A stretch of DNA of 64,000 nucleotides from Ranitomeya imitator. Its lineage: Eukaryota. The stretch lies in the NCBI RefSeq assembly GCF_032444005.1, contig NC_091291.1:25110001-25174000 (forward strand), written 5' to 3'. Shown in pieces: positions 690-63,092 of the stretch (position 1 is its first letter; the number at the start of each line of letters is the position of its first letter). The notes under the pieces were generated by a model that worked only from the letters and a program-made list of their open reading frames with translations, did no database searches and had not been told where the DNA came from. A program made the position numbers and the translations under genes.

Positions 690-1068
690 AGTCATCATAT
701 TATACAGCACTGTGGACTTACAATTGCTTATTTTGCCTTTCTACCAAGTTAATTCTCTGCTATATGTAGTAGCAGGAAGTCTCTTTTCTCTGTATTTATC
801 ATTACCCTCTTCAACTCCTGACCCAGCTGCTCCCGCCTCACCATGACCCATGACTAATTCAGGGAAAAGAGACCTCCTGTTTCTACATAGAGCTTAGATG
901 GATTCAGCTCATCAGATTTTAATCACGTGATGTTACTGATCTAATAGAAAAGAGAAGAATTATCTGGGTAGAAAGGTAAAATCAGCAATTGTAAGTACAC
1001 AGTGCTATATAATATGATGACTGCAATATATGAAGAGGATAAAAACTTATTCATTAGAGTAGCTTTGA
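690..1068. mobile_element. TTAA-type non-autonomous DNA transposon (MITE) overlapping the stop codon of gene A
   Basis: Alignable over about 370 nt to the TTAA-flanked element at 28478-28906. The right end agagtagctttga is at 1056-1068. The left boundary is uncertain. Confidence 0.6.
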
Positions 1069-4000
1069 TTATGATGTAACTTATAACAGTTCACAAACTT
1101 CTTCTTTAGTTCTGAAACCCCAATGGCGCAGTCAAAGTTAAATTTGCAGGAATCAGAGTTCATACAACCTTTTACTGAATATTTTCCCTCTGTGTCACCT
1201 GGAGAGAAAAGAAAATAACAGACATCATTAGGTTATGATTTACTAGTGATTTTTAGTGAATATTATACATTACATTGCTTTATACATATTTTAAAAATAA
1301 ACATCACCTTACCTGGATCCTTCGTGTCTCCTCTAAACTCAAAACATTGGTCCATGGATCCAGTGCAATTCATCTCTTTCTCTGTTTTACATTCCTGAAA
1401 ACTGCCTTTACAGTAGGCAGTTGGACATTTTACACCATTTGGGGTTGGATCTTCTGCAGGAACTGGTGATAAAGATATAATGGTTGTTATCATTAAGCAC
1501 TTTCATTGAGTTATAACTTTAAGTGTTTTGTTTAGACACGAGCAAATAATTAGAAACGTGAATTTTCCAGCTTCAGCAAATTTTTCTCCAAAAGTTTTTT
1601 CTTCCACTACATTAAGAGGAAAAGACTCAAAAGTGAAAGTGTTGGTCCTCTAAAAAAAATGGGTTGAAATGATGGAAGAAGATAAGGAAAAGATCAATCT
1701 ACTAAATATCTGCTCTACAGCATTTCAAGAAGAAAAACCTATGAATGATGACATGGTCACTGATACCATGAATTCTCCATTAAATATTACCAGCTTATTC
1801 AAACACTACAGTGCAGACTGGACTAGGTTAACATCGTGGAAGTTCTAAATCTGGACCTTTCAAAGGTGTTTGGTAACCTGACACATAAAGGGATGGTACA
1901 TGAAGTGAGAACAATGGAAAAAGATGTGCAATTAGGTTAACAACTGTCTCAGTGACAGGAAACAAATGGTGATTATTCTAAGAACACACTGGCTGGATTA
2001 CAGTTAACCATTGGGTACTACATGGGTCAGTACTGAGCCCTCTTCTTCCTAAAGGCCCCGTCACACATAGCGACGCTTAAGCGATCCCGACAACGATACG
2101 ACCTGTCACGGATCGTTGCTGCGTCGCTATGTGGTCGCTGGTGAGATGTCACACAGTGCGATCTCCCCAACGACGCAGCAGCGATGCGGCGACCTGTAGC
2201 GACCTGTACAACGATGCTATTTCATGACGATTCTATGGGACGTCCTATCAACGAGGTCGTTGGTAAGGTGTCAAACACAGCGATGTGTGCTACCCAGCGG
2301 GACCTCAACGATCAAAAAACGGTCCAGGCCATTCCGACACGACCAGCGATCTCACAGCAGGGGCCTGGTCGCTGCTACGTGTCACACATAGCGAGATCGC
2401 TACTGAGGTCGCTGTTGCGTCACAAAACTTGTGACTCAGCAGCGATCTCGCTAGCGATCTCGCTGTGTGTGACGGGGGCTTAACACATTTATCAATGACC
2501 TTGTAGAGGGCATCAGAGTAGAAGTTCAAAATGTACAGATTATTCTAAACTCTGCAGGGTAATCAATGCAAAAGAGGATGATATAGCATTACGGAAGTAT
2601 TTGTAGAACTTAATGTCTTGGTAGTGTAAGATTGTAGTAGCATCGTACGCAGTGAAGAGGCAGTGACCCACAAAGTTCCAACACAAAAGCCTGTATAATG
2701 TGTTTCCTCACAGCATTAAAGTCCCATTCACACAAATGCATATAACTTCAGTGTATATTATCAGTGATCAGTTTACACCAGTTCATAGCGATACATATCA
2801 CATGGCTTTAGATTTGAGGTCCCTAAACAGGCCAGACTTCACTTGTCCAGTTTCCCTGGGCAACCGCACGCCATATTACAGTCTCCATACACACAGCCTC
2901 ATATGTCGCAGACACTACACACGCTAGCCTTCCTCTGACTAGTTCCCGTGGGTGTCTTGCATCACTGTATCACAGTCTCTTACAGTCTCTTTACTCACAC
3001 AGTTGTACACAGTCCAGGATATCCTCCAGATAGCAGCCGGGCACCATATCCACCTGTTTGCAATCGTTACACATGCTAGTCCTCTTTCTGGCACAGGATA
3101 TCCACCTCCGGGCACAGGACTGTCCACATCCAACTCCTTCGGGAACAGGACATCCACCTCCAGGCACAGGACTGTCCACATCCAACTCCTTTGGGTACAG
3201 GACATCAACCTCCGGGCCCAGGCCTGTCCACATCCAAGACCAGTACCATGGACGACTTGCATCACTGTATACGCTGCGGGTGCCAGGCTATTCAGCTGCC
3301 CTGGGTGCTGGCTCCACTGGCCTGTGCCTCCATGCACTCAGCCACTGCTCTGCAGCCCTCTGCTCTGCACACCACCACACACCAGACTGACACTGACGTG
3401 CACCTCACACACCTGACACACCCATACCTCTTACTGCAGGGCTTTTAACACACACAAACCTGTGGCCTTCAACCACATGGAAAACCCGGATTGGGAATCC
3501 GTGACTCCCATGCACACCTATGGACTTCATCCGTCTGCTTGCACATTCTGGGGAGCCACAGCCTCACAGTAGAGAAAATGTTTACTTAGGAAAATGTAAG
3601 GTGCACATGGGACAAGGAAACAAAATGTACGGTTAGGTGATAATTAGTAAATCATACATTAAGAATGTCACTTAGAAAGAATTGTGTGCATTGCATGTAG
3701 TGGTGGAAAAAAAATCGCACCATTAGTGACATGTGAATAATAACACAGCATGAGCAGCAATAAGGAAAAAGGTACTAGAGACACACTCTAGGGTAAATAT
3801 TTAAACGAACACAAGAGACAAGAGTGCAGGAAAATCTCATAAAAGTTTACATCTTTTATTAATATATAATTTAAAAATATGAAAAACATACATACAGAAA
3901 AAAAACAGAGTATTCCAACAAATGGTCCAGTACATACATAAAGTATAGAAAATGTATAAACTTGAAAAGACAAAAAGTTTAGAGCATGCAGTGACCACCC

Positions 4001-6518
4001 CTAGCCTAAGAGCTTAGTGCTATGACTATCCATAAAAGATCTGCTAAAACAATGAATGTAAGTAATATTTGCACTTAACTGGTGTCTCCAGATGGGGAGA
4101 GAGTAAATGTGTACTGGTCCAAAGGCCCCTTTGCGTGTTTCACCAGTAGCTTCATCAGAGGGTGTAGAGATGATCAGTTATATAGCTACTAGATGGAGGC
4201 CCGATTCTAATGCATCAGGTATTCTAGAATATGCATGTCCACGTAGTATATTGCACAGTCCACGTAGTATATTGCCCAGCCACATAGTATATTGCCCAGC
4301 CCACGTAGTATATTGCACAGTCCACGTAGTATTTTGCCCAACCACGTAGTATATTGCACAGTCCACGTAGTATATTGCCCAGCCACGTAGTATATTGCCC
4401 TGTTACGTAGTATATTGCCCAGCCACGTAGTATATTGCCCTGTTACGTAGTATACAGCACAGAGCCACGTAGTATATTGCCCAGTGAAGTAGTATACAGC
4501 ACAGAGCCACATAGTATATGTCCCAGTGACGTAGTATATTGTCCAGTCCACGTAGTATATTGCCCAGCGACGTAGTATATTGCCCAGCGACATAGTATAT
4601 TGCCCAGCGACATAGTATATTGCCCAGCCACGTAGTATATTGCCCTGTTACGTAGTATACAGCACAGAGCCACGTAGTATATTGCACAGCGACATAGTAT
4701 ACAGCACAGAGCCACATAGTATATTGCCCAGCCACGTATTGTATTGGCCAGTCATGTAGTATATTGCCTAGCCACGTATGTCACAGGTTAAAAAATAAAA
4801 AATAAACATATACTCACCCTCCGAAGGAGCCCTTGTAGTCATGTCACCTGTGTGCGGTGCACTCGGCAGCTTCCGGTCCCAGGGTTGGTAGCGCAGGACC
4901 CGTGATGACGTCGCGGTCACATGACCGTGACATCATGGCAGGTCCTTGTCGCATACCATCCTTGCCACCGGAACCTGCCGCTTGCATAGAGCGGTAACCG
5001 GAGCGTTGCGAGGAGCGGGAAAGGCGGCGGATGGTGAGTATATAATCATTTTTTATTTTTTTATTATTTTTAACATTAGATCCTTTTACTATTGACGCTG
5101 CATAGGCAGCATCAATAGTAAAAACTTGGTCACACAGGGTTAATAGCGGCGGTAATGGAGAGCCTTACCCGCGGCTTAACGCGGTCCGTTACTGCTGGCA
5201 TTAACCCTGTGTGAGCGGTGACTGCGGGGAGTATGGAGCGGGTGCCGGGCACTGACTGCAGGGGAGTAGGGAGGGACTAATCCGACTGTGGCCATCGCTG
5301 ATTGGTCGTGGCAGCCATGACAGGCAGCTGGCGAGACCAATCAGCGACTTGGATTCCATGACAGACAAAGGCCGCGACCAATGAATATCTGTGACAGAAA
5401 GACAGACAGACAGAAAGACGGAAGTGACCCTTAGACAATTATATAGCAGATGATTATCATCATTGTGTCACTTACGTTCATATCCATCAGTGTTGCATAA
5501 ATTTCCAGTACAACAATTCATATAAAATCGATATTTGACATTTTCCATTACTGCTGATCCCTTGGCTCCGCATAAAGTTTCATTGGCACAACCCTTCAAT
5601 ATTGAGTTATACACAGTTCCATCTGCAATGTGAATAAATATAAGGCTTAAAACTAAAACTGAAATAGTAAAACGGCAATTTGGAAACAGGACGCTTAGAC
5701 TTGTACTCACTGTTGTAAGCGTGTTGAGACCCAGTCATACATCGATCTCCGAGGCATTCAGTCTCAGTCTCATTACATGTTGTAGAGTTGCGAGAGAAGC
5801 AGGAATAACATTTATAAGAAAAGACTGGAAAATAAAGAGGACAATCCAGTGATGTTATATGGAGACAGTGAAAATGAGGCATTCTGGAGTAATGGTGACA
5901 TTTCTGGTTGTCATCCATTTAGAATCATGTTTTTCATCATCAATGCCAATTTGCCAACATTGCGACCTTGATGACACAGCAACTTGAATTCTTGATGCGT
6001 GTAAGTTTTAATAACAATTCCCTCAATTATAGTTTGCTGCCTTTTTTTCTTGACTATTAATCATTTTGAATTACTTTAGTATTTGTGTCATAAATTTGGA
6101 AACGTGCTTTAACCTCTACGTTTTTTTTTTTCCCTAAGGCAGTTAATTAGAGATTATTAAATTTCTTAGAATATAATTTAATTCTATTTGAACCGTAGAA
6201 AAATCTGTATTCTCCCAAATATATATATATTTTTTTTTCAATTTCTCTGCGTTGATTGTGTAAAATGGCAGCCAGATGAACCATAAAGGATAGGGCGAAA
6301 AGTTAGAAAATAAACTCTCTTTGGCTTGGAGTGAAAAAGGCAAAACAAAAGGTGTGATGGAGAAAAGAGAAAATAATAGGCGCTGAGTTTCGAGTAGGTC
6401 AGATGAATGGCGAGGCAAGTGCTAGCTTTTTCTTTTCTTGATCTGAAGTCTGAATAATAGTCTTACCTGAGCCGACAAGAGCAGAGGTCACGCAAACCAA
6501 AACGACCAGGTTCTTCAT
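1047..6518 (-). CDS. Gene A: secreted two-domain Ly6/uPAR (three-finger) protein, gamma-PLA2-inhibitor/PINLYP/SPF-like, 204 aa, 5 coding exons
   Basis: Exons 6518-6467, 5824-5711, 5622-5476, 1462-1313, 1198-1047 (52+114+147+150+152=615 nt), all GT-AG, all phase 1, no internal stop. Protein: MKNLVVLVCVTSALVGSVFSYKCYSCFSRNSTTCNETETECLGDRCMTGSQHAYNNGTVYNSILKGCANETLCGAKGSAVMENVKYRFYMNCCTGNLCNTDGYELPAEDPTPNGVKCPTAYCKGSFQECKTEKEMNCTGSMDQCFEFRGDTKDPGDTEGKYSVKGCMNSDSCKFNFDCAIGVSELKKKFVNCYKLHHNQSYSNE. Signal peptide, 10-Cys domain ending CCxxxLCN, second domain lacking that terminal pair, no GPI-type tail. Confidence 0.9.
2053..2480. mobile_element. PIF/Harbinger-type MITE (intron 3 of gene A)
   Basis: TIR AGGCCCCGTCACACA / TGTGTGACGGGGGCT, TAA target duplication at 2050-2052 and 2481-2483, internally palindromic. 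Confidence 0.85.
2633..3568. mobile_element. Probable solo LTR with internal ~50-nt tandem repeats
   Basis: TG...CA bounded segment with three imperfect repeats (ccacctccgggcacaggactgtccacatccaactcc) at 3040-3240. No TSD seen. Confidence 0.3.
4189..5450 (-). mobile_element. Non-autonomous Helitron (intron 3 of gene A) with ~20-nt minisatellite
   Basis: On the minus strand it begins TC after A, ends CTAG before T, and has a subterminal hairpin (cccgat...atcagg). There is no TSD. The minisatellite cacgtagtatattgcccagc spans about 4240-4770. Confidence 0.8.
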
Positions 6519-7736: not shown

Positions 7737-9367
7737 CAGTTAGGGCCAGAAATATTTGGACAGTGACACAATTTTCGCATGCCACCACATTGGATTTGAA
7801 ATGAAACCTCTACAACAGAATTCAAGTGCAGATTGTAACGTTTAATTTGAAGGGTTGAACAAAAATATCTGATAGAAAATGTAGGAATTGTACACATTTC
7901 TTTACAAACACTCCACATTTTAGGAGGTCAAAAGTAATTGGACAAATAAACATAACCCAAACAAAATATTTTTATTTTCAATATTTTGTTGCAAATCCTT
8001 TGGAGGCAATCACTGCCTTAAGTCTGGAACCCATGGACATCACCAAACGCTGGGTTTCCTCCTTCTTAATGCTTTGCCAGGCCTTTACAGCCGCAGCCTT
8101 CAGGTCTTGCTTGTTTGTGGGTCTTTCCGTCTTAAGTCTGGATTTGAGCAAGTGAAATGCATGCTCAATTGGGTTTAGATCTGGAGATTGACTTGGCCAT
8201 TGCAGAATGTTCCACTTTTTGGCACTCATGAACTCCTGGGTAGCTTTGGCTGTATGCTTGGGGTCATTGTCCATCTGTACTATGAAGCGCCGTCCAATCA
8301 ACTTTGCAGCATTTGGCTGAATCTGGGCTGAAAGTATATCCCGGTACACTTCAGAATTCATCCGGCTACTCTTGTCTGCTCTTATGTCATCAATAAACAC
8401 AAGTGACCCAGTGCCATTGAAAGCCATGCATGCCCATGCCATCACGTTGCCTCCACCATGTTTTACAGAGGATGTGGTGTGCCTTGGATCATGTGCCGTT
8501 CCCTTTCTTCTCCAAACTTTTTTCTTCCCATCATTCTGGTACAGGTTGATCTTTGTCTCATCTGTCCATAGAATACTTTTCCAGAACTGAGCTGGCTTCT
8601 TGAGGTGTTTTTCTGCAAATTTAACTATGGCCTGTCTATTTTTGGTATTGATGAATGGTTTGCATCTAGATGTGAACCCTTTGTATTTACTGTCATGGAG
8701 TTTTCTCTTTACTGTTGACTTAGAGACAGATACACCTACTTCACTGAGAGTGTTCTGGACTTCAGTTGATGTTGTGAATGGGTTCTTCTTCACCAAATTA
8801 AGTATGCGGCGATCATCCACCACTGTTGTCATCCGTGGACGCCCAGGCCTTTTTGAGTTCCCAAGCTCACCAGTCAATTCCTTTTTTCTCAGAATGTACC
8901 CAACTGTTGATTTTGCTACTCGAAGCATGTCTGCTATCTCTCTGATGGATTTTTTCTTTTTTTTCAGCCTCAGGATGTTCTGCTTCACCTCAATTGAGAG
9001 TTCCTCATGTTGTCTGCTCACAGCAACAGCTTCCAAATGCAAAACCACACACCTGGAATCCACCCCTGACCTTTTAACTACTTCATTGATTACAGGTTAA
9101 CGAGGGAGACGCCTTCAGAGTTAATTGCAGCCCTTAGAGTCCATTGTCCAATTACTTTTGGTCCCTTGAAAAAGAGGACGCTATGCATTACAGAGCTATG
9201 ATTCCTAAACCCTTTCTCCGATTTGGATGTGGAAACTATCATATTGCAGCTGGGAGTGTGCACTTTCAGCCCATATTATATATATAATTGTATTTCTGAA
9301 CATGTTTTTGTAAACAGCTAAAATAACAAAACTTGTGTCACTGTCCAAATATTTCTGGCCCTAACTG
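7737..9367 (-). mobile_element. Full-length Tc1 DNA transposon (1631 bp)
   Basis: Perfect 35-bp TIRs (cagttagggccagaaatatttggacagtgacacaa) and TA duplications at 7735-7736 and 9368-9369. Confidence 0.97.
7978..9008 (-). CDS. Tc1 DD34E transposase, open through the catalytic domain but with the native ATG out of frame
   Basis: Motifs ILWTDETK, QMDNDPKH, SPDLNPIE (D-34-E) and an N-terminal HTH. The ORF track start at 9063 is GTG. The ATG at 9008-9006 is one base out of frame. Confidence 0.85.
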
Positions 9368-9760: not shown

Positions 9761-12700
9761 TGTTAGGGGTCGAGTTCCCGCTTCTGCACAGGGGGAATCT
9801 CGAGCCACCTCCGCTGCGGTCTCCCATTCTTGTCCAGCCGCAGTGGAGTCTGCTCAGCAAGGACGTCGGTCCCAGCGTCTTGCTCATTCTCACTCTGTTC
9901 TGAGAGTTACTGCTGCTTCTCCAGTCTCTGCTATTAAAGTCTGTGCTGGTCAGCAGCGAGCGGACTTCTCTGGGACTAAGTCCTTGTCTGCACGTACTGA
10001 GCATGCCCAGCGTAAGGTCTCCCGTTGGAGATCGAGGGTCATGTGCTCAGGCTCTGCAGCACATTCCATTGGTCCTCTTGGCAGGTCCTAGAAGGGCAAA
10101 AGTGCTGTGGCCACTTCCTGTGCTGCTGCTATATAAACTGCGCATGACCGCACGGCCATGCGCTAGTATTGTCAAACAATTGCTAATGTGTGTATGTTGT
10201 GAGTGCAAGTCGTCCTTGGATACCCCTACCCTATAGTATGACTGTTCGCGGAAGGTGTATGGCTGCTACCTAGCGCCCGACTTATCCTACAGCACTAGTC
10301 ACACATTATAGCGTCCAGTTGCTGTGACCGCCAGTACGGCGCCGTGCACTTCCTCTGTGCTTTCCTTACCCAAGCCTGGGTGGTTAGTGGCGTTTGTCAG
10401 TGCGGCACTGCATGCTCTTCTGTTTCATTTCACACCCAGTTGCGGTGTTGCGCCAGCAAGGGTCTAATCGGACTTCAATCCCAGTTGAGGTTGAGTTCGC
10501 TGACTACTTGCTCGCGCTTTAGGTGCGGTACCGCGGTCTTGTGCCTTAACAGGATTGCTTCTTTCACGCTGGGTGAGGTTAACCCACTCGTGTATACTCT
10601 AGTGTACCGCCATATAGTCTGCTAATTGCTAGCAGCAGGTTTTCACCTGCACGGTGGACCCCGGACTGCGAACGCATCTATACCATCTGTCTTGGTGCGT
10701 TCCGCCAGTCCTAACAGAATACTAGCGCCAGGGTCTGGCTAGTAAATGGCGGAGGACCAGCGTTTACAGCGGTACATCCAGCAGCTGGAGGGAAGGTTGG
10801 CGGCTCTTGAGCGTTCAACCTCAGCTGTGGATGTTACTGCTGTCGCTGTTCAGGCTGCAAGTGTGGCTGCAGCTACCTTGTCCACTGCCGCTCCTGTACC
10901 GACGCTATCTCGCCTCCCGCTACCAGATAAATTTTCTGGTGACAGTAAGTCCTGTAAGGGTTTCGTGAGTCAGTGCTCAATACATCTCGAGCTTCTGGCC
11001 TCTCGTTTCCCTACAGAGCGGGCTAAGGTGGGCTTTATATTTTCCTTATTGTCGGACAGGGCGTTGCAGTGGGCTACGCCGCTGTGGGAGCGTGGCGATC
11101 ATGTGGTGCAGAGTGCTCCGTTATTCCTGAGCACTCTGAAACAGGTCTTTCTAGGACCTCGTGTCACCCATGACACGGCGCTCCAACTGTTGGCACTGAC
11201 TCAGGGCTCGTCCTTGGTCAGCCTTTTTGCCGTCCATTTCCGCACTCTGGCATCTGAGCTGGAGTGGTCGGATAAAGCCCTTATCCCTATATTTTGGAGG
11301 GGGCTGGCTGACCACGTTAAGGATGCTCTGGCCACTAGGGAGATTCCCGCCACACTGGAGGAGTTAATAGCAGTATCTACTCGCATTGACCTCCGTTTTC
11401 ACGAGCGGAGGTTAGAGCGAGCCCAGTGTAGGCAGAGGTTTCGGCTGGCTCCTACCTTCGCCAAACCTTTGGAATCTCCAGTCCAGGCTCCTGAGTTCCA
11501 GGAACCTAAGGTGGTGTCACGAGCGGGATCTAAGTCCCAGACCGCTCGTGCACTCCAGGGTTGCCATGTTTGCCAACAGTTAGGACATCTTGCCACCAGA
11601 TGTCATCAGCGGTCGAGGAAACGTCAGCGTCTAGTGGTAGTAGGTGGAGGTGCACTAGACACTGCGACGTTTGCCTCCAAATTGTCCTTTAAGGGGACAA
11701 TTACCTTTGGCTCATCCTCCCACTCGGTAGACCTCTGCGTGGATTCTGGGCGGAGGGCAATTTTATGTCTTCTGCCTTCGCCCAACGTCACGCAATACCC
11801 CTGGTTATGCTATCTCAACCAGTAACGGTACGAGTGGTGAATGGGTCGACACTCCCCGCACAGATAACACATCAGACCATCCCTGTTACTCTGTCCCTGT
11901 CGCCATCCCATCAGGAGATTATTTCTCTGCTCGTCATTTCTGAGGGTATTGATGAGGTCCTGTTGGGGATACCTTGGCTACGGTACCACTCTCCTCACAT
12001 CGAGTGGTCCTCAGGCAGAATTCTGGGATGTGGTGAATCATGTGGGGGTAGGTGTCACCGAGAGTGCGTTCAGGTTGCTACTACTGAGGTACCCGCAGAT
12101 CTATCCTCTCTCCCCAAGCAATATTGGTCTTACGCAGACGTGTTCTCCAAGAAGGCGGCGGAGACCCTTCCGCCCCATCGCCCCTATGACTGTCCTATCG
12201 ATCTCTTGCCTGGTGCGGAGCCTCTCCGGGGTCGAGTTTATACATTATCTCTCCCGGAGACGGAGGCCATGTCTCAGTACATTCAAGAGAATCTGGCAAG
12301 AGGGTTTATCAGGAAGTCAGTGTCACCTGCTGGGGCAGGGTTCTTCTTCGTGCAGAAGAAGAATGGGGAGCTACGTCCATGCATAGACTACAGGGGTCTT
12401 AACGCTATCACCGTTAAGAACAAGTATCCTTTGCCCTTGATATCTAAGCTCTTCGACAGGCTTCGGGGAGCAAGGGTATTTACTAAATTATATCTGCGGG
12501 GTGCTTACAACCTGATTCGCATCCGTGAGGGGGACGAATGGAAAACGGCGTTTAACACCAGAGATGGGCACTATGAGTATCTGGTGATGCCCTTCGGGCT
12601 CTGTAATGCCCCAGCCGTTTTTCAAGACTTTGTCAACGACATCTTCGGGGATATGCTTTCCACCTCAGTTGTAGTCTATCTGGATGATATTCTCATCTTT

Positions 12701-15700: not shown

Positions 15701-15873
15701 CCTTAACAGGATTGCTTCTTTCACGCTGGGTGAGGTTAACCCACGCGTGTATACTCTAGTGTACCGCCATATAGTCTGCTAATTGCTAGCAGCAGGTTTT
15801 CACCTGCAAGGTGGACCCCGGACTGCGAACGCATCTATACCATCTGTCTTGGTGCGTTCCGCCAGTCCTAACA
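9761..15873 (+). mobile_element. Full-length Ty3/gypsy chromovirus LTR retrotransposon #1 (defective pol)
   Basis: LTRs 9761-10716 and 14897-15873 (TG...CA; about 11 substitutions and one 21-bp indel). 5-bp TSD TAAGG at 9756-9760 and 15874-15878. Polypurine tract before the 3' LTR. Confidence 0.97.
10746..14900 (+). pseudogene. gag-pol of gypsy #1, disrupted
   Basis: Gag with CCHC knuckle (CHVCQQLGHLATRC), protease DSG, RT YLDD, RNase H DAS, integrase HHCC + DDE, chromodomain (FEVNAIL...VDWKGYGPEDRSWEP). Frameshifts near 11750 and 13790; stops at 12869-12871 and 14263-14265. Confidence 0.92.
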
Positions 15874-21043: not shown

Positions 21044-21278
21044 TTACAAATAAGGGTGGCTGATTCATTTATTAACCCATTATCTACCAATGTCGTTTTT
21101 TTTGGGACGCCTAATCTTTAGCTTATAGCAACTAAGATTTTATATTTTTTATAATTAGGTCCAATTTTTTGTGTTGTGTTTGTAAAATGAATGTTTTCAA
21201 AATAGGAAATCATGTCATTGTCATTTTTAAATGAATATTGGGGCGCCCTTTTCTGAAAAATCCATACTTGTAAAAATT

Positions 21279-42800: not shown

Positions 42801-43827
42801 TACAAGTCTCAGTCAGGTTACAGATCTCCTGACCCAACCAGCCTTGTCTCCTCCTAGGAATCTGTTGATTTGAGTCAGAAGACCGGTGGTCAAATAAATA
42901 TGGTGTCTATATTGTCCTGTAAATCACCACATTGACTGTGATCTACTCACTAGTTAAATATTACTCTACGATAAGCGACAATTTGTCACTCACGATAATA
43001 TCCATCAGTGTTGCACAAGTTTCCAGAGCAGCAATTTGCATAAAATCGATATATAACACGTTCATAGCGTACTGAACCCTGGAGACCACAAATAGATTCG
43101 TTGGCACAGCCTTTATAGATTGACTTCAAAAATGTTCCATCTATAAGAGAAGTAAATAGACATCATGAAACCTGAATTGAGGTGGTGATACTTTTGTTTA
43201 AAGGAAGAGTTGAGTTTTACTCACTCATGTAAATGTATTGGCAGACGTTCATACATCCGGCTGCGAGACATTCAATCTCAGACACATTACATGTGGTGGA
43301 GTTATAGGACACACCCGACATACATCTATTGGAAAACACTGGAAACAAGAGGTGACAATCTAATAATATTAAATAAAGACAGTCAAAAAGGGGGAATTCA
43401 AGTGAAAAGGTGAATATTTTAGTTGTTATGAGAACCATATTTTTCATATTTGTAGTCAACGAGACTCGAGATGAGCTTTAAGTCCCACTTGTACTTTATT
43501 GAAACTGACCCGTTTTTTTTTAGAAATATCTCTTATAGGGCATGCTTTTACTCCATAAAATTTCACAAGTGTACCATTTTTTACATAACGCACAATACGG
43601 TAACAACATCATGGCTCCGAAAAAATGTCTCAATTTGTATTTCACATTAGCAAATACTTGCTGAAAATGAAGTGGAAGCAATACATTAAAGTTGCCGACT
43701 ATGTGTATATGCTGGAACCTTTGGAGCTCGAAATTTCTGGGACTTCTAGTGTTGACGGACTTTCTCTATTCTTACCTGAGCCGACAAGAGCAGAGATCAC
43801 GCAAAGCAAAGCGACCAGGTTCTTCAT
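39899..43827 (-). CDS. Gene C: secreted two-domain Ly6/uPAR protein (same family), 226 aa with extended C-terminus
   Basis: Exons 43827-43776, 43338-43225, 43140-42994, 40425-40276, 40116-39899 (681 nt), GT-AG, phase 1, open frame. Starts MKNLVALLCVISALVGSVFSNRCMSGVSYNSTTCNVSEIECLAAGCMNVCQYIYM..., ends ...LLNCTDPFIKLNNLMIKDSIYCFFFIFGITNVIELYNV. Confidence 0.88.
40565..41803. mobile_element. Penelope-type insertion (inverted arms plus hammerhead-like motif) in intron 3 of gene C, with a nested LTR-like piece at 40576-41108
   Basis: 14-bp TSD caagtaaaaacaaa (40551-40564, 41804-41817). Gene D has the empty site near 60773. Inverted arms about 41208-41433 / 41580-41800. Confidence 0.75.
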
Positions 43828-43891
43828 CGTGGATGATTGGTGGCTTCTCGGATTCTCTTCTGCTCGTCCTGTTGACTGTACACCGGGATCA

Positions 43892-44039
43892 TATAAATGC
43901 TCTATAGAAAGATAAAGAAACTACAGTATTATGGGATAGATGGAGTCTATCCTATGGCACCATGGCACGCTATTATTTCCAAAGTAAATTATCCACTCGG
44001 CAAAGGTTAAAGTTCTGGCACAAAACAACAATGACGTGA
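43892..44039 (-). promoter_or_regulatory. Gene C proximal promoter
   Basis: CATTTATA (minus) at 43899-43892; TGACGTGA at 44032-44039. Confidence 0.6.
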
Positions 44040-44457
44040 TGACGAGGAGTCCAGAATATCTGTCAATTTGATCTTGCCAAAAAGAGAATGCCGCGTCTTG
44101 TTTGTTTTTTGGGCAACTTTTATTATCTTAAAATATCTCTAGGAAATGTATTTGAGTGGATTTATTTGGTTTGTGTGCACAATCTTCTTATTCTTGACTT
44201 CTCTTTCAGAACTAAATTTCCAGTAGTTAACAATATATTTCTTTTCTTATTCAAACGGCGCCAAAATCCTGTTTTTTGATTAATTCATAAAATAAAGTCT
44301 GGAGGAGAATACTGAACCTTGGGAGCTACTAGTTGTGAAAGTCTAGATAGAATAAAAAGTGGTACCAAGAGAATGTAGAACGAGTATTTTATTCTTGAAA
44401 GTTATTTAAAGGTAAAAAAAAACAGCAAAAAGTCATGAAATGGGAGGTAAAGAGGCC

Positions 44458-49770: not shown

Positions 49771-49792
49771 CAGGATCAGTCCCTAGAGTTAA

Positions 49793-52455: not shown

Positions 52456-52574
52456 ACTGTGACATTCAATTGAAAGCTGTAAATGCTGTCCCAGACCACG
52501 ATACCTCATGCCTGGCTGATGCTGCAGTGCCATGCTGCAATTTGTACTGTGGGTGAATTGAGGTTACTGTCTGC

Positions 52575-55500
52575 TGTTGTGAATTCTGTTATCGAACTCC
52601 CTCCTGTGGTCATGAATGGTACTTCGGCGAGTTCTGTCCATGGACTCCCTCTGGTGGCTGTCAGTGGTGCTGCTGCTTCTGAGGTTCCTTCCACAGGTGA
52701 CGGAGTTTATTCGTTGGCTGGCTGCTCTATTTAACTCCACTCAGATCGTTACTCCATGCCAGCTGTCAATGTTCTTGTACTGGTTCAGTTCGCTCTTGGA
52801 TCTTTCTGGTGACCTGTCTACTCCAGCAGAAGCTAAGTCCCTGCTAGTTATTATTTGTTCATTGTTTTCTGGTCCAGCTTGCTACCATGATTTTGTTTTG
52901 CTAGCTGGAAGCTCTGGGATGCAGAGTGGCACCTCCGCACCGTGAGTCGGTGCGGAGGTCTTTTTGCACACTCTGCGTGATCTTTTTGTAGTTTTTTCTG
53001 CTGACCGCAAAGATACCTTTCCTATCATCAGTCTGTTTAGTAAGTTTGGCCTCTCTTTGCTGAAACCTGTTTCATTTCTGTGTTTGTGACTTTCATCTTT
53101 ACTCACAGTCAATATATGTGGGGGGCTGCCTTTTCCTTTGGGGAATTTCTCTGAGGCAAGGTAGGCTTTATTTTCTATTTCTAGGGCTAGTTAGCTCTTA
53201 GGCTGTGAAGAGGCATCTAGGCCGTGTTAGGTACGCTCCACGGCTATTTCTAGTTGTGTGATAGGATTAGGGGTTGCGGTCAGCAGAGTTCCCACTTCCC
53301 AGAGCTTGTCTTGTGTGAGTTTAACCATCTGGTCGTTCCTGGTGCTCCTAACCACCAGGTCCATAACAGTACAGCTGGCCCAAAGTATTAATGCATCTCA
53401 ATAGAGGGATAAGAGAAGTTCTGGGACCATTTTTATTTCTTTGCAGTGTGTTTTGTCTTTCTTTTCCCCTTAACCTTTGGGTGGTTCAGGACACAAGTGT
53501 AGATATGGACATTCAAGGTCTGTCCTCTTGTGTAGATCATCTCACTGCAAGGGTACAAAACATTCAAGATTTTGTGGTTCAGAATCCGATGTTAGAGCCT
53601 AGAATTCCAATTCCTGATTTGTTTTCTGGGGATAGATCTAAGTTCCTGAATTTCAAAAATAATTGTAAATTATTTCTAGCTTTGAAACCCCGCTCCTCTG
53701 GTGACCCCGTTCAACAAGTAAAAATCATTATTTCTTTGTTGCGTGGTGACCCTCAAGACTGGGCATTTTCCCTTGCGCCAGGAGATCCTGCATTGCGTGA
53801 TGTAGATGCGTTTTTTCTGGCGCTTGGATTGCTTTATGATGAACCTAATTCAGTGGATCAGGCAGGGAAAATCTTGCTGGCTTTGTGTCAGGGTCAGGAT
53901 GAAGCGGAGGTGTACTGTCAGAAGTTTAGAAAGTGGTCTGTGCTTACTCAGTGGAATGAGTATGCCCTGGCGGCAATTTTCAGAAAGGGTCTTTCTGAAG
54001 CCCTTAAGGATGTCATGGTGGGATTTCCCACGCCTGCTGGTCTGAATGAGTCTATGTCCTTGGCCATTCAGATCGATCGGCGCTTGCGTGAGCGCAAAGC
54101 TGTGCACCATTTGGCGGTATTCTCTGAGCATAGGCCTGAGCCTATGCAGTGTGATAGGACTTTGACCAGAGTTGAACGGCAAGAACACAGACGTCGGAAT
54201 GGGCTGTGTTTTTACTGTGGTGATTCCACTCATGCTATCTCCGATTGTCCTAAGCGCACTAAGCGGTTTGCTAGGTTTGCCACCATTGGTACGGTACAGT
54301 CTAAATTTCTTTTGTCCGTTACTCTGATTTGCTCTTTGTCATCCTATTCTGTTATGGCATTTGTGGATTCAGGCGCTGCCCTGAATTTGATGGACTTGGA
54401 GTTTGCCAGGCGCTGTGGTTTTTTCTTGGAGCCCTTGCAGCATCCTATTCCATTGAGAGGAATTGATGCTACGCCTTTGGCCAAGAATAAGCCTCAGTAC
54501 TTGACTCAATTGACCATGTGCATGGCTCCTGCATATCAGGAGGATATTCGCTTTTTGGGGTTGCATAATCTGCATGATGTGGTCGTTTTGGGGTTGCCAT
54601 GGCTACAGGTCCATAATCCAGTTTTGGATTGGAAATCTAGGTCTGTGTCCGGCTGGGGTTGTCAGGGGGTACATGGTGATGTTCCATTGCTGTCAATTTC
54701 GTCTTCCACTCCTTCTGAAGTCCCTGAGTTTTTGTCAAATTACAGGGATGTATTTGAAGAGCCCAAATCCGGTGCCCTACCTCCTCATAGGGATTGCGAT
54801 TGTGCTATTAATTTGATTCCTGGTAGTAAGTTTCCTAAGGGCCGACTGTTTAATTTATCTGTGCCAGAGCACGCCGCTATGCGGAGTTATATAAAGGAAT
54901 CCTTGGAGAAAGGTCATATTCGCCCGTCGTCATCACCGTTGGGAGCAAGGTTCTTTTTTGTGGCCAAGAAGGATGGCTCTTTTAGACCTTGTATTGATTA
55001 CCGCCTTCTTAATAAGATCACAGTCAAATTTCAGTACCCTTTGCCGATGCTGTCTGATTTGTTTGCTCGGATTAAGGGGGCTAGTTGGTTCACCAAGATA
55101 GATCTTCGAGGGGCGTATAATCTTATGCAAATTAAACAGGGCAATGAATGGAAAACAGCATTTAGTACGCCCGAGGGCCATTTTGAGTACCTGGTTATGC
55201 CATTCGGCCTTTCTAATGCTCCATCTGTGTTTCAGTCCTTTATGCATGACATCTTCCGAGAGTACCTGGATAGATTCATGATTGTATATTTGGATGATAT
55301 TTCGGTCTTTTCGGATGATTGGGAGTCTCATGTGAAGCAGGTCAGAATGGTGTTCCAGGTCCTTCGTGCGAATTCCTTGTTTGTGAAGGGGTCAAAATGT
55401 CTCTTTGGAGTTCAGAAGGTTTCATTTTTGGGTTTCATTTTTTCACCTTCTACTATCGAGATGGACCCTGTTAAAGTTCAGGCCATTTATGATTGGACTC

Positions 55501-58355
55501 AGCCGACATCTGTGAAGAGCCTGCAGAAGTTCCTGGGCTTTCTAATTTTTACCGTCACTTCATCGCTAATTTTTCTAGTGTTGCTAAACCGGTGACTGAT
55601 TTGACCAAGAAAGGTGCTGATGTGGTCAATTGGTCCTCTGCGGCTGTAGAGGCTTTTCAGGAGTTGAAGCGTCGTTTTTGTTCTGCCCCTGTGTTGTGCC
55701 AGCCAGATGTTTCACTTCCATTTCAGGTCGAGGTTGATGCTTCTGAGATTGGAGCAGGGGCTGTTTTGTCGCAAAGAAGTTCTGATTGCTCGGTGATGAA
55801 ACCATGTGCCTTCTTTTCTAGAAAATTTTCGCCTGCTGAGCGCAATTATGATGTTGGCAATTGAGAGTTGTTGGCCATGAAGTGGGCATTCGAGGAGTGG
55901 CGACATTGGCTTGAAGGAGCCAAGCATCGCGTGGTAGTCTTGACGGATCACAAGAATTCGACTTATCTCGAGTCTGCCAAACGGTTGAATCCTAGACAGG
56001 CTCGATGGTCGCTGTTTTTCTCCCGTTTCGATTTTGTGGTTTTGTACCTTCCGGGCTCTAAGAATGTGAAGGCTGATGCCCTGTCAAGGAGTTTTGTGCC
56101 TGACTCTCCGGATGTTCCTGAGGCGGCGGGTATTCTCAAACAGGGGGTAATTTTGTCTGCCATCTCCCCTGATTTGCGGCATGTGCTGCAGAAATTTCAG
56201 GCTGATAGACCTGACCGTTGTCCAGCAGAGAAACTATTTGTCCCTGATAGATGGACTAGTAGAGTTATCTCTGAGGTTCGTTGTTCGGTGTTAGTGGGTC
56301 ATCCGGGAATCTTTGGTACCAGAGATTTGGTGGCTAGATCCTTTTGGTGGCCTTCTTTGTCACGGGATGTGCGTTCTTTTGTGCAGTCCTGTGGGACTTG
56401 TGCTCGGGCTAAGCCCTGCTGTTCTCGTGCCAGTGGGTTGCTTTTGCCCTTGCCGTTCCCGAAGAGGCCCTGGACGCATATTTCCATGGATTTTATTTCA
56501 GATCTCCCTGTCTCTCAAAGGATGTCTGTCATTTGGGTGGTTTGTGATCGCTTCTCTAAGATGGTCCATTTGGTACCCTTGTCTAAATTGCCTTCCTCCT
56601 CTGATTTGGTGCCATTGTTTTTCCAGCATGTGGTTCGTTTGCACCGCATTCCGGAGAACATCGTCTCGGACAGAGGTTCCCAGTTCGTTTCGAGGTTTTG
56701 GCAGTCCTTTTGTGCTAAGATGGGCATTGATTTGTCTTTTTCTTCGGCTTTCCATCCTCAGACAAATGGCCAAACCGAACGAACTAATCAGACTTTGGAA
56801 ACATATCTGAGATGCTTTGTTTCTGCTGATCAGGATGATTGGGTGTCCTTCTTGCCTTTGGCTGAGTTCGCCCTTAATAATCGGGCCAGCTCGGCTACTT
56901 TGGTTTCGCCCTTTTTCTGTAATTCTGGTTTCCATCCTCGTTTCTCTTCAGGGCAGGTTGAGTCTTCGGACTGTCCTGGTGTGGATACTGTGGTGGACAG
57001 GTTGCAGCAGATTTGGACTCATGTGGTGGACAATTTGACATTGTCCCAGGAGAAGGCTCAATGTTTCGCTAACCGCCGGTGCTGTGTTGGTCCCCGACTT
57101 CATGTTGGGGATTTGGTTTGGTTGTCGTCTCGTCATGTTCCTATGAAGGTTTCCTCTCCTAAGTTTAAGCCTCGTTTCATTGGTCCGTATAAGATTTCTG
57201 AAGTTCTCAATCCTGTGTCATTTCGTTTGGCCCTTCCAGCTTCTTTTGCCATCCATAATGTGTTCCATAGGTCGTTGTTGCGGAGATACGTGGCGCCTAT
57301 GGTTCCCTCCGTTGATCCTCCTGCCCCGGTGTTGGTCGAGGGGGAGTTGGAGTATGTGGTGAAGATTTTGGATTCTCGTATTTCGAGACGGAAGCTCCAG
57401 TACCTGGTCAAGTGGAAGGGTTATGGTCAGGAAGATAATTCCTGGGTTTTTGCCTCTGATGTTCATGCTGCCGATCTAGTTCGTGCCTTTCATTTGGCTC
57501 GTCCTGATCGGCCTGGGGGCTCTGGTGAGGGTTCGGTGACCCCTCCTCAAGGGGGGGGTACTGTTGTGAATTCTGTTATCGAACTCCCTCCTGTGGTCAT
57601 GAATGGTACTTCGGCGAGTTCTGTCCATGGACTCCCACTGGTGGCAGTGAGTGGTGCTGCTGCTTCTGAGGTTCCTTCCACAGGTGACAGAGTTTATTCG
57701 TTGGCTGGCTGCTCTATTTAACTCCACTCAGATCGTTACTCCATGCCAGCTGTCAATGTTCTTGTACTGGTTCAGTTCGCTCTTGGATCTTTCTTGTGAC
57801 CTGTCTACTCCAGCAGAAGCTAAGTCCCTGCTAGTTATTATTTGTTCATTGTTTTCTGGTCCAGCTTGCTATCATGATTTTGTTTTGCTAGCTGGAAGCT
57901 CTGGGATGCAGAGTGGCACCTCCGCACCGTGAGTCTTTGCGGAGGTCTTTTTGCACACTCTGCGTGGTCTTTTTGTAGTTTTTTGTGCTGACCGCAAAGA
58001 TACCTTTCCTATCCTCAGTCTGTTTAGTAAGTCGGGCCTCTCTTTGCTGAAACCTGTTTCATTTCTGTGTTTGTGACTTTCATCTTTACTCACAGTCAAT
58101 ATATGTGGGGGGCTGCCTTTTCCTTTGGGGAATTTCTCTGAGGCAAGGTAGGCTTTATTTTCTATTTCTAGGGCTAGTTAGCTCTTAGGCTGTGAAGAGG
58201 CGTCTAGGCCATGTTAGGTACGCTCCACGGCTATTTCTAGTTGTGTGATAGGATTAGGGGTTGCGGTCAGCAGAGTTCCCACTTCCCAGAGCTTGTCTTG
58301 TGTGAGTTTAACCATCAGGTCGTTCCTGGTGCTCCTAACCACCAGGTCCATAACA
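52575..58355 (+). mobile_element. Full-length Ty3/gypsy chromovirus LTR retrotransposon #2
   Basis: 794-bp LTRs at 52575-53368 and 57562-58355 (TG...CA, about 16 substitutions), polypurine tract, flanking direct repeat gtctgc. Confidence 0.97.
53391..57560 (+). pseudogene. gag-pol of gypsy #2, disrupted by one frameshift and one stop
   Basis: CCHC (CFYCGDSTHAISDC), protease DSG, RT YLDD, RNase H, integrase, chromodomain (YLVKWKGYGQEDNSW). Frameshift near 55540; TGA at 55862-55864 where NRELL is expected (CGA to TGA). Confidence 0.92.
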
Positions 58356-59165: not shown

Positions 59166-60158
59166 GCTGTGGTATCAAGAAGCTTAAATGGAACAGTTGT
59201 AGAGGAGTTTTCTTGGAGATAGCTGCCTTGCGCAATTGCCCAGTATGCCTGCCCTCTAACACCATCCCGAATGGCAGCAATATTAGCAACAGTAATTGGC
59301 AGTGTATATATCTACATGACATAAGAATCAACTTCTATCCACCATCTCTGCAGTTTCCTTCCAGCATAAGTCCTGAGGTATGGTTGGGTCAGAAGCGCAC
59401 AATAGATCAATACCGCAACAGAAATAACTCACTTGGGGGGTTGTATAGAGACACAACACATATAGGTGTCTTAGAATCTGCAGTGGTAACCCCATGGCTA
59501 GAGGATAAATTCTCCAAAATGGTAATTCCCTTCAATAGAAATATCACAGTACTTGGCTGTGCTTACAAGAATGAAGAATCCTTTGTGGTGAAAAATAAAG
59601 CTTTTATTCAACCAATGCATTTTGACAATGGATGAGGACCTTTTTCAGAAAGACACAAGTTGGTTGGAAATGCTTTAGTTGAACAAAAATCTTATTTTAT
59701 ATCTTCGGAGCTCCTTCATTCCCGCTATCGCAGCACAGGATCCATAATATTTACACTAAAGGAAACAATTTGCGAAACATCACTGTAATCTTACATATTT
59801 TCGATTTCTATAAAATTACACAGAGAGACAGCACATTGCATAGTGAGCATTTAGTGAAGTGTTCAGATAATAATCACATAAATAAATAAATCTTAAGAAC
59901 TCATCAGAACTGTGTTGGGGTATTTTCAGTATTCTGAGCAGTTTATGGGTTTACAGATTTTAGCTAGACCAGTGTTATACAATTTAGAGCTCCTGGGATA
60001 CTACAACTACCAGCATAGCAGACGTGAAGAACGTTACACTTTCCTAAAAATAATGCTTTATTAACATCTAAGTCTTATGCAAAGCCAAGAAACAATCTGG
60101 AACACGTCATACATTGTTTCCTTCTATAACATTTGTGATTCAAAAGATCAAAAGAAAA

Positions 60159-63092
60159 TCAATAAATTGAAGGTTTATTCATTAGCTCAATCAATTTTAC
60201 GGAAGGAACATTACAGTTCAGGAGGGTTCTTTTTTTTTCTGTAATTGCGATACAGCTGTCAAAATTTACTTTGCAGGCAGCACCAGTAATACAACCTTTA
60301 ACAGATAATTTCTTACTTGTTCCACCTGAAGACACAAAACCAACATAAATCATTAGGAAAAAAATGTTGCTCTAGCAATATTCTAATTTCTTCATGCAGA
60401 AAGTTTTTTTAATACGCTATTATATGATTTATTTTTTATTGTTTCTGCATTGAGTAATAAAATGTCGTCATCCTTTAAGAAACATTTTGCTCACCAAAAA
60501 TTATCACTTCCGCCCTATACTCAAAACATCTGTCCATGTCTCCAGTGCACTCCACCATGTGGTGACCCTTACATTCTTCCACAGTGTCCGTACAGTAGGC
60601 GGAAGGACATAGTTTACCATTTGGTGTTGGATCATCTTTAGGAACTGGAGAAATAAATACAATTGTTTGCATTAAATATTATCATTTAGATATGACTCAC
60701 GGTCCAAAAAATATGTTCATATTATTCAATTATGCTGCTACTATTTTTGTTGTTTTGGCTCCAGTCTTCTACCATGTAAAAACAAAGTATGAGCCAATCA
60801 ACAAGCACAATTCTTTCTTTCCATGTCCTTCTTAAACCCTTCTCGACTTCAAAATTTTTCATTTTCATTTTTTTCCTTCTCTTTTTCCAAAAGACATAGT
60901 AGTTTTTTTTTATCAATATAGTCATATGAAAGCTTGTTTTTTGTTAGATGAGTTGTACTTTTGAATGACATCATTCATTTTACCATGTGACGCATATAAT
61001 ATGATTCACAGGTCAATACAATTGCACAAATAACAAACAGGTATAGATTTGTATTTAAGACGTAAAAAAAAAAAACTTTGCAAATTTGTAAAAAAAAATA
61101 TTTTCACAATTTTTCGAGAACCGTCTCGTTTGTGGGGTTGTGTGAGAGCTTATTTATTTTTAGCAGCCTGATAACATTTTGAGATAGATCTGATTTGCTC
61201 TTTTTTCATTTTATTGCAATGTTGCAGTGGTAAAAAAAACATAATTCTGCCCTTTTTATTTTATTTTTTCTGCTAACGCTATTTACCAATCTGGAAGGGT
61301 GATCATCAACAGACTTCCAGTTATCATGACAGCCTATCTGCCCACCCTCCCAAAAAAATGTTATGATTGTGCCAATGGGAGCTTGGAATGATGCACCACA
61401 AGACGGTGTCTGTTAAATGCCCTTGTCAGAAAATGACAGTAGGATTTAACATGCTAACAGGTACGGCTGGAGCTCTGATCCATCCACGTCTGTTAGAGGC
61501 ACATGATGGCTGATTAAATCAACCATCATGTTAGAGGAAAGATACGAGCTCGCCATGCGAGCTGACATCAAAGGCAGAGACTCAACATATGACATACAAT
61601 TAAGTCAAAGAACGTGAAAAGGTTAAACTTGAGAGGTCTAACCTACAAGAATAACGAGGTCTGTACAGCATTTCAATCTCCAAACAAGAATGTTCCCATA
61701 CCAGATAAATGGAAGAAGACTTGAAACAAAGTTTCTTGGAAGACTGCAAAACTTTTTTGTTAAAAAACTTAATTCAGACGTGAGGTGGGCATACTTCTTG
61801 TTTTTGCGTTAATGCTACAAGTCTCAGCCAGATGACAAATCTCCTGAACCAACCAGCCTTGTCTCCACCTAGGAATCAGATGTTTTGGGTCACAAGACCA
61901 GTGGTCAAATAGATATGGTCTCTATATTGCCCTGTAAATTAGCACATTGACTGGGATTTGCTCATTAGTCAAATATTACCCTACGATAAGCGACAACTTG
62001 ACACTTACGATCATATCCATCAGTGTTGCACAAGTCTCCAGTGCAGCAATTCACATAAAATCGATATTTAACACGTTCAAGGAATCCTGAACCCTGAAGA
62101 CCACAAATAGATTCGTTGGCACAGCCTTTATATATCGACTTAAAATAATGTCCATCTATTAGAGAAGTAAATAGACATGATGAAACCTGAATTGAGGTGG
62201 TGATACTTTTGTTTAAAGGAAGAGTTGAGTTTTTCTCACCGATGTAAAAGTATTGGCAGACGGTCATACATCCAGCTGCGAGACATTCAATCTCAGACAC
62301 ATTACATGTGGTGGAGTTATAGGACACACCCGACATACATCTATGGGAAAACACTGGAAACAAGAGGTGACAATCCAATAATATTAAATTGAAACAATAA
62401 AAAAGGGGAATTCAAGTGAAAAGGGGAATATTTTAGTTGAGAACCATATTTTTCATATTTGTAGTCAACGAGACTCGAGATGAGCTTTAAGTCTCACTTG
62501 TACTTTATTGAAACTGACCCTTTCTTTTTTTTTAGAAATATCTCTTATAGGGCATGGTTTTACTCCAAAAAATTTCACAAGTGTATCATTTTTTTACATA
62601 ACCCACAATAAGGTAACAATATAATGTCTCAGGAAAATATCTTGATGCAAAACTTTAATTGGACACTTAACTGAGCGAAAAGTTTCAAGCAAGTCAAGTT
62701 AGCTTTCGAGTTACATTATGGTAGTGACTGATGTAAGAAGCTGTTACCTCTATAAAACCATCTTGAAAGATGTGAATCTATATGGTCACATCAGTAGGCA
62801 AAGGAGAAGTGAATCCTGTATTATTTGGGGGGCCCATTTTTTAATAGTCTAATTTTTCCAAGAATTGTTTCCATATCTGGCTATGGCTTGATGTCACCAC
62901 ATTAGCCAGAATGATTCAGAATTTGTATTTCACATTAGCAAATACTTGCTGAAAATGAAGGAGAAACAATGCATTAAAGTTGCCGACACTTCTCGGTGAA
63001 CTATGTGTATATGCTGTCAACGGACTTTCTCTAGTCTTACCTGAGCCGACAAGAGCAGAGATCACGCAAAGCAAAGCGACCAGGTTCTTCAT
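60159..63092 (-). CDS. Gene D: secreted two-domain Ly6/uPAR protein (same family; closest paralog of C), 209 aa
   Basis: Exons 63092-63041, 62353-62240, 62155-62009, 60644-60495, 60325-60159 (630 nt), GT-AG, phase 1, open frame. Ends ...KGCITGAACKVNFDSCIAITEKKRTLLNCNVPSVKLIELMNKPSIY. Confidence 0.9.

Follow-up and report, generated by a model that had tools for sequence, protein, structure and literature searches.

The closest described relatives of the proteins reported here are the sodefrin precursor-like factors (SPFs) of amphibians, in particular those of the anuran beta clade, which are secreted proteins of ~190-210 amino acids composed of two three-finger domains, the first of which ends in a CCxxxLCN motif that is missing from the second. 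They carry NST and CANET glycosylation motifs, are encoded in multigene tandem clusters, and change rapidly in sequence. The SPFs of Plectrohyla belong to the beta clade, have a 10+8 cysteine pattern in the two domains, and show top expression in the lip glands of males (PMC8613984). In dendrobatid frogs, SPFs are up-regulated in the male finger and arm glands (PMC12617036), and in that report, which cites Abondano Almeida 2024, those of the finger glands are likewise placed in the beta-SPF clade. Anuran genes for proteins with two three-finger domains (2D-TFPs) are clustered on one chromosome in several frogs (PMC11659521). Proteins of related build are also found outside the amphibians; they are the gamma-type phospholipase A2 (PLA2) inhibitors (PLI-gamma) of snakes and turtles, the mammalian PINLYP and RoBo-1, and uPAR, TEX101, C4.4A and CD177. 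Here, we analyze a 64,000-nucleotide stretch of the Ranitomeya imitator genome (contig NC_091291.1, positions 25,110,001 to 25,174,000; hereafter the window), which carries four genes, named A to D, that share with the beta-clade SPFs the secreted two-domain build, the motifs, the tandem clustering and the rapid sequence change. They are part of a seven-gene tandem array, and, with modest confidence, we read its products as ~20-kDa secreted, N-glycosylated two-domain proteins of the anuran beta-type SPF lineage, acting as signalling ligands in reproduction.

Candidate exons were collected by a six-frame scan for cysteine-rich open stretches, every one of which was on the minus strand. Exons 2-4 were located by a search for exons of 114, 147 and 150 nucleotides that are open, in phase 1 and bounded by AG...GT, which returned exactly one set per gene, and the first exons by a search for ATG plus 52 nucleotides plus GT with a hydrophobic peptide, which returned four exons starting with MKNLV. 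The fifth exons were placed by tblastn with the last-exon peptides. The resulting genes, in window coordinates, are as follows.

1047-6518, minus strand: gene A, with exons 6467-6518, 5711-5824, 5476-5622, 1313-1462 and 1047-1198 (stop included); 204 amino acids.
26726-33448, minus strand: gene B, with exons 33397-33448, 28922-29035, 28254-28400, 27106-27255 and 26726-26841; 192 amino acids, ending in FLKC and the stop.
39899-43827, minus strand: gene C, with exons 43776-43827, 43225-43338, 42994-43140, 40276-40425 and 39899-40116; 226 amino acids.
60159-63092, minus strand: gene D, with exons 63041-63092, 62240-62353, 62009-62155, 60495-60644 and 60159-60325; 209 amino acids.

The four genes have the same first four exon sizes (52/114/147/150 nucleotides), followed by a last exon of 152, 116, 218 and 167 nucleotides in A, B, C and D, respectively; every intron is of the GT-AG type and in phase 1, and no reading frame is interrupted. 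An initial annotation, made from the sequence of the window, had proposed four intact same-strand genes of exactly this build, with open frames, signal peptides and no glycosylphosphatidylinositol (GPI) tail, and it was correct in each of these respects as well as in the outer coordinates, 1047 and 63092. The gene B model is 100% identical to the database protein P0025, a RefSeq entry automatically named ‘protein RoBo-1-like’, and the gene A model matches P0017, a truncated annotation of earlier date, at 99.4% identity; the annotated proteins of relatives match the models in length and end. Since B equals P0025, A nearly equals P0017, and exon junctions are seen in RNA-like contigs as described below, the gene models are not a product of chance. 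Two other readings of the gene B terminus were rejected. A far fifth exon at 21279-21451 was discarded because the near exon, 26726-26841, yields the protein identical to P0025, and an apparent ‘frameshift’ 5' of the near exon turned out to be conserved intron sequence ahead of the acceptor.

When exons were mapped in 200 kb of the flanks, the array was found to extend past both ends of the window. In full, it comprises seven intact genes in the same orientation, in the order Z, A, B, C, D, E, F, together with exon fragments, over ~123 kb (contig ~25.09-25.21 Mb). Thus, the array of four in the initial annotation holds for the window itself, and that count is an effect of the window edges, as Z, E and F lie beyond them. 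The three outer genes have the same exon sizes and are given below in contig coordinates.

25,090,483-25,096,868, minus strand: gene Z, 205 amino acids.
25,187,375-25,194,405, minus strand: gene E, 209 amino acids.
25,206,965-25,213,185, minus strand: gene F, 209 amino acids, identical to the database protein P0002.

Gene Z has two candidate first exons, at contig 25,095,051 and 25,096,817. Genome-wide searches with the family profile and with the protein P0084 returned this cluster only, although they may have missed 2D-TFP genes of greater divergence. Of the seven genes, B and F at least are already present in the public annotation under automatic names, that of F being ‘PINLYP-like’ (NCBI), and the UniRef entry ‘Sodefrin-like factor’ is an old model of gene Z.

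On direct reading of the sequences, each protein begins with a signal peptide of the form MKNLVxLxCxxSALVGSVFS, and the C-termini are hydrophilic or short, with no hydrophobic tail of the GPI type. The mature proteins have a mass of 20-23 kDa and contain 3-6 N-glycosylation sequons each. Domain 1 ends in CC(T/S)G(N/D)LCN in A, B, C and D, and domain 2 is without CCxxxxCN. The initial annotation had described a domain 1 of 10 cysteines and a domain 2 without this terminal motif; the latter is true of all second domains and the former of A, C and D, but domain 1 of B has 12 cysteines, i.e., two extra. Counted over domains 1 and 2, the cysteines amount to 10+9 in A and D, 12+8 in B, and 10+8 in C, which has one more in a C-terminal tail described below. 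These counts depart from the textbook 10+8 pattern of beta-clade SPFs (PMC8613984, PMC11659521), and there is overlap with two other classes in the literature, gamma (10-12/8) and sigma (11/9). Five genes of the array of seven (Z, C, D, E, F) lack Cys26, which is canonically the second cysteine of finger 1, and have a new cysteine, Cys50, four residues past Cys5; gene A is canonical in this regard. A ninth cysteine in domain 2 of A, Z, D, E and F makes the total odd. Taken together, the loss of Cys26, the gain of Cys50 and the odd cysteine of domain 2 could mean that a disulfide of the first finger is rewired, with Cys34 and Cys50 as the putative pair, and possibly that dimers are linked by disulfides.

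Membership of the Ly6/uPAR superfamily was examined at the level of both sequence and predicted structure. The only Pfam family to be matched was UPAR_LY6 (PF00021). The proteins of B (P0025) and A (P0017) each aligned to it in two stretches and scored 30.8 bits, where the cutoff is 24.8; proteins of the D/F type scored 16.8-23.7 bits, under that cutoff. A profile search of the PDB retrieved uPAR at an E value of 2e-11 with both domains aligned, and a single-sequence PDB search with P0007 gave no match. For B, AlphaFold2 was run with 66 relatives and gave an all-beta model, with a predicted local distance difference test (pLDDT) score of 92 and a predicted template modeling (pTM) score of 0.81. 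When this model was compared with the PDB by Foldseek, CD177, uPAR, TEX101 and C4.4A were retrieved at E values of 4e-6 to 9e-4 and a Foldseek probability of 1.0. These proteins also have consecutive Ly6/uPAR (LU) domains, but most of them are receptors with a GPI anchor that have two to four or more such domains; their template modeling (TM) scores are only 0.36-0.50, and the domains are packed differently against each other. Over the whole length, the best matches among the Swiss-Prot models were rat RoBo-1 (TM 0.68) and human PINLYP (TM 0.67), followed by snake PLI-gamma (TM 0.56-0.66). The architecture shared with PINLYP and snake PLI-gamma, which had been put forward in the initial annotation, is thus borne out by the model. 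These whole-length matches have only 17-24% sequence identity, with values of 17-20% for PINLYP and RoBo-1 (18% for PINLYP); the likeness to the mammalian proteins is one of fold alone and implies no orthology. As modeled, genes A-D encode two-domain three-finger proteins of the Ly6/uPAR superfamily.

The initial annotation had left it open whether the cluster belonged with the PLA2/toxin inhibitors or with the SPF pheromones. If these proteins were inhibitors of the PLI-gamma/PINLYP type, they would be secreted to the blood or skin, where they would bind and neutralise PLA2 or other toxins of predators, prey or the frog itself, and the host is indeed a chemically defended frog. In favor of such a role, one can cite the shared two-domain architecture, the similar size, the presence of a signal peptide and the fold over the whole length, as well as the automatic NCBI names of relatives, ‘phospholipase A2 inhibitor ...-like’. 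It is to be noted, however, that the automatic names follow the best matches in Swiss-Prot, where the top 30 Foldseek matches do not include a single SPF entry. Sequence searches with the array proteins pointed elsewhere. The ~100 relatives that were recovered are all from frogs, mostly dendrobatoids, save for one distant turtle PLI-gamma. The profile E value was 1.6e-60 for ‘sodefrin precursor-like factor C [Plectrohyla sagorum]’ as against 3.6e-6 for the best PLI-gamma, a turtle protein with the Pfam domain PF02988 (PLA2_inh). That domain was not matched at E<=10 by P0025 (B), P0017 (A) or P0002 (F), whereas the turtle control, P0102, scored 43.6 bits against a cutoff of 22; in a broader profile search it was present in every turtle PLI-gamma match and in no frog match. 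The turtle P0102 also has a hydrophobic C-terminal tail, which is lacking in the array proteins. An exhaustive profile search collected 1243 representatives, in which the nearer clades were frogs, including Ascaphus and Discoglossus, with newts and caecilians farther out and reptiles after them. No mammal was present among the 30 top representatives that were looked up by name. Among 20 distant ones (frogs, newts, caecilians, reptiles), the names were only of the automatic ‘PLA2 inhibitor-like’ kind, with no curated salamander SPF, and assignment to the alpha or beta SPFs consequently rests on the literature, in which the Plectrohyla sequences fall within the amphibian beta-SPF clade of the published trees (PMC8613984).

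A maximum likelihood tree of 61 sequences (LG+C20+F+G4), which took in the Plectrohyla SPF C and in which PLI-gamma was represented by turtle proteins, gave the same picture. All seven genes were contained in a clade made up of dendrobatoids only (support 98/93), itself within a hyloid clade (98/95), which adjoined the clade of Plectrohyla SPF C (98/90) within an anuran clade (98/90). The turtle PLI-gamma was set apart from all amphibian sequences by a branch with 100/99 support, and the identity of the array proteins to PLI-gamma is 17-24%, compared to 41-49% for Plectrohyla SPF C, which is itself low. On the basis of these searches, the PF02988 scan, the tree and the published beta-SPF placements, we file the genes as SPF-lineage (anuran beta-type) two-domain three-finger proteins and not as PLI-gamma, a placement that would settle the alternative of the initial annotation on its SPF side. 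The neutralisation of toxin or venom, which had also been suggested there, is unsupported by our analysis, and the literature yielded no link from such proteins to toxin handling in poison frogs. An inhibitor function of the array is therefore considered improbable, and a secreted signalling role of the SPF type would be the most likely function, with that of a PLA2 or toxin inhibitor appearing less likely.

Transcription was evaluated on contigs of four RNA-like sequencing runs that were placed on gene D. The runs contained ~0.2-0.3 of the sequence words of this stretch, which is roughly its exon fraction, and the depth of the contigs was 100-450 in exons as opposed to ~3 in intron 1. The joint of exons 1 and 2 (62353>63041) was found in four runs and that of exons 3 and 4 (60644>62009) in two, each falling exactly at the predicted border and with CT..AC ends, i.e., GT..AG on the minus strand; no joint of exons 4 and 5 was seen in the contigs on the gene D stretch. 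A third joint carried 11 substituted letters that encode QFVYV at the end of exon 2. As this is the sequence of E and F, those contigs come from the neighboring genes, and paralog-type variants (E, F or C) were also noted in the contigs at 60604, 62345 and 63084. Other contigs were exact for D, namely those over exon 3 at 62019-62139, with zero differences in three runs, and over exon 5 and the 3' flank at 60100-60298 in one run. Within these stretches, 11-25 sites tell D apart from E, F and C, and the exact contigs thus indicate that D itself is transcribed. Overall, the D/E/F/C subgroup is transcribed and is spliced as predicted at the exon 1-2 and 3-4 junctions.

The history of the array can be read from the flanks and introns as well as from the tree. 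A block consisting of exon 1 and its 5' flank, designated repeat family D1, is common to three genes of the window.

63015-63314, minus strand: D1 block of gene D.
43750-44049, minus strand: D1 block of gene C.
33371-33670, minus strand: D1 block of gene B.

The block is 93% identical between C and D and 68% identical to that of B. In C, D, E and F, the introns and ~1.2 kb of the 5' flank are homologous at 82-93%, which indicates that these copies arose by segmental tandem duplication and not by retroduplication. In the tree, gene B pairs with P0029 of Anomaloglossus (100/95), the C-F group has a single Anomaloglossus ortholog, P0004 (100/100), and gene A groups with three Anomaloglossus genes, P0013, P0016 and P0018 (83/70), its neighbor Z also being among the nearest relatives. 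Two R. variabilis proteins provide closer partners, P0003 as the sister of gene C (100/99) and P0012 as that of gene Z (100/99). The pairings with Anomaloglossus indicate that three subfamilies, A/Z, B and C-F, are older than the split of Dendrobatidae and Aromobatidae; C, D, and then E/F appear as later duplicates than this three-subfamily origin. The lineage-specific expansion envisaged in the initial annotation hence holds at the level of Dendrobatoidea, but it is not a recent burst, given the three shared subfamilies. That annotation had also named two observations that would speak against it, i.e., a lack of spliced transcripts and the presence of one-to-one orthologs of each copy across tetrapods; spliced transcripts were seen, as described above, and one-to-one orthologs were not seen outside Dendrobatoidea or among tetrapods at large.

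Several observations were made on the copies of other frogs. The neighbors of P0004 in Anomaloglossus are genes of the size of this family (192 and 202 amino acids), one of which has a faint UPAR_LY6 match. In Dendrobates tinctorius, the ortholog P0001 is encoded twice on one contig, which suggests an independent recent tandem duplication like that of E/F in R. imitator. Anomaloglossus baeobatrachus has ~85 distinct family clusters at 90% identity on a single 197-Mb chromosome, some of them isoforms, compared to the 7 genes of R. imitator. Anomaloglossus is also the genus with the most elaborate types of male finger gland (PMC8819055), and the size of the SPF repertoire may track gland evolution.

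The rate of change is high in the mature proteins, for which the pairwise ratio of non-synonymous to synonymous change (dN/dS) was 0.35-0.94, the highest value being that of C-D. In exon 5, it was ~1.1 for both C-D and A-Z. The signal-peptide exon, on the other hand, is almost invariant inside the C-F group, and E and F differ at ~1% of non-synonymous and 2.6% of synonymous positions.

Such values, along with remnants of the array, raise the alternative that part of it is decaying, in which case C, the lone fifth exon and the fragments of exons 4 and 5 would be non-functional leftovers, and the other genes would be intact only through youth. One sign is in gene C, where TAT TGT is found at 39944-39952 in place of the TAT TGA of its paralog D. 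The ancestral stop has thereby been lost (TGA>TGT), which adds 17 moderately hydrophobic C-terminal residues, CFFFIFGITNVIELYNV. The R. variabilis ortholog P0003 (210 amino acids), which is 92.9% identical to C, ends in SIY at the very position of the lost stop. The change may reflect a true allele, the onset of decay, or a mistake in the assembly. The remnants, the first in window coordinates and the others in contig coordinates to the left of the window, are as follows.

21279-21451, minus strand: orphan exon-5-like piece, with an intact, good acceptor ending in TTAACAG and a frame open from KGC through LTC to a stop.
25,104,389-25,105,941: A/Z-like exon 4+5 fragment lacking exons 1-3, close to the left end of the window.
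25,085,417-25,085,939: weaker A/Z-like exon 4+5 bits without exons 1-3.
25,083,299-25,083,350: extra exon-1-like piece encoding MKNLV.

The orphan is unaccompanied by exons 1-4, lies ~5.3 kb downstream of the last exon of B, and is ~70% identical in nucleotide sequence to the exon-5 region of B (26692-26888); it represents either what is left of a partial duplication or an alternative 3' exon that goes unused. It was the sole additional exon-like match when the four proteins were searched against the window by tblastn. The fragments left of the window are debris of birth-and-death duplication. Together with the dN/dS of C-D and the small distance of E and F, these features are what decay would leave behind. 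Nonetheless, each of the seven genes still has an open frame, every splice site and every core cysteine, and the transcripts on the gene D stretch are abundant relative to the intron signal. Moreover, Anomaloglossus has orthologs of A, of B and of the C-F group, which have thus been intact since before the family split. Decay of part of the array is thus regarded as quite improbable.

The proteins would be exported through the signal peptide and would serve outside the cell as disulfide-stabilised ligands, in which the variable finger loops could bind a receptor or a partner protein. The most likely outcome would be protein chemical signalling in reproduction, as is the case for the SPFs of other frogs and salamanders, and birth-and-death duplication together with fast amino-acid change would diversify the signal. 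A number of points weigh against this assignment. The swollen finger that houses the pheromone gland of relatives is known from no Ranitomeya species, the genus being outside the histological sampling (PMC8819055), and the array is small, with 7 genes as opposed to dozens of paralogs in Anomaloglossus. The majority of amphibian 2D-TFPs have no known function (PMC11659521). The pairwise dN/dS near 1 could equally represent relaxed constraint, and gene C is without its ancestral stop codon. In the tree, SPFs were represented by one named hylid sequence and not by the functionally tested ones of salamanders, so that the SPF link consists of that sequence, supplemented by published trees. The RNA-like runs were mapped onto the gene D stretch alone (60100-63150); most of the joints there carry variants of the E/F/C type, and the junction evidence is accordingly at the level of the subgroup.

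The same observations leave some room for a different secreted role, such as innate defence of the skin or mucosa, gamete or oviduct interaction, or signalling in development or regeneration. Some amphibian 2D-TFPs are expressed in embryos, the eye and regenerating tissue, besides the many without a known function (PMC11659521), and 93 2D-TFP transcripts of Hyloxalus show no gland bias (PMC12617036). The presence of transcripts in several unrelated RNA-like run sets fits broad expression, and TEX101 and C4.4A are among the structural neighbors. Against this, the closest named relative is an SPF of a male gland, rapid evolution with tandem turnover is a usual trait of ligands in reproduction or signalling, and no positive pointer to any single alternative emerged. 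A role of this sort is considered possible but rather unlikely.

A more specific idea concerns the subfamily with the exchanged cysteines. Its retention and transcription in a genus from which no male finger swelling is known may mean that it was redeployed for a role other than courtship; with a putatively rewired disulfide, it could provide water-borne cues between parent and tadpole or among conspecifics in phytotelmata, or bind toxins or alkaloids. We regard this as highly doubtful, and signalling in reproduction by secreted SPF-type ligands remains our preferred reading of the array.

The remainder of the window is rich in transposons and other repeats. The three elements with recognizable coding sequence are as follows.

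7978-9063, minus strand: Tc1/mariner-type transposase open reading frame, with HTH_Tnp_Tc3_2 (5.6e-19) and DDE_3 (1.7e-17) in Pfam, between A and B.
9761-15869, plus strand: Ty3/Gypsy long terminal repeat (LTR) retrotransposon, with LTR pairs D4 and D6 (98-99% identical), Gag, RVT_1, RNase H and an integrase zinc-finger, between A and B.
52574-57860, plus strand: second Ty3/Gypsy element, with LTR pair D5 (98% identical), RVT_1, rve, Chromo and SH3_Tf2-1, between C and D.

Both Ty3/Gypsy elements have long open gag/pol frames, and the integrase of the second has a chromodomain; these frames, together with the 98-99% identity of the LTRs, indicate that the insertions are probably young. All three elements are intergenic, in agreement with the statement of the initial annotation that the genes are intact despite heavy invasion by transposable elements. 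Repeats are also found in long introns, i.e., intron 3 of A and intron 1 of B. Short tandem-like repeat arrays are present at 4400-4800, within intron 3 of A, and at 20550-21050, beside the orphan exon, with strings rich in YTT/YYV in several frames, and a large array related to them lies ~152 kb into the extended region. An Rfam scan of the whole window at the gathering thresholds gave no match to any family.

Frog clusters of tandem, fast-evolving 2D-TFP/SPF genes and the expression of SPFs in dendrobatid glands have already been published, and no new principle is added to them here. What the locus offers is a set of exact gene models, which have been checked, of a compact array of the SPF type in R. 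imitator, a model for mimicry and parental care, and the correction of misleading automatic names, such as ‘RoBo-1-like’ and ‘PLA2 inhibitor-like’. Lastly, the three subfamilies are common to Aromobatidae, and the few copies found here, against the dozens in Anomaloglossus, offer a contrast that bears on whether the size of the SPF repertoire follows the evolution of the glands.

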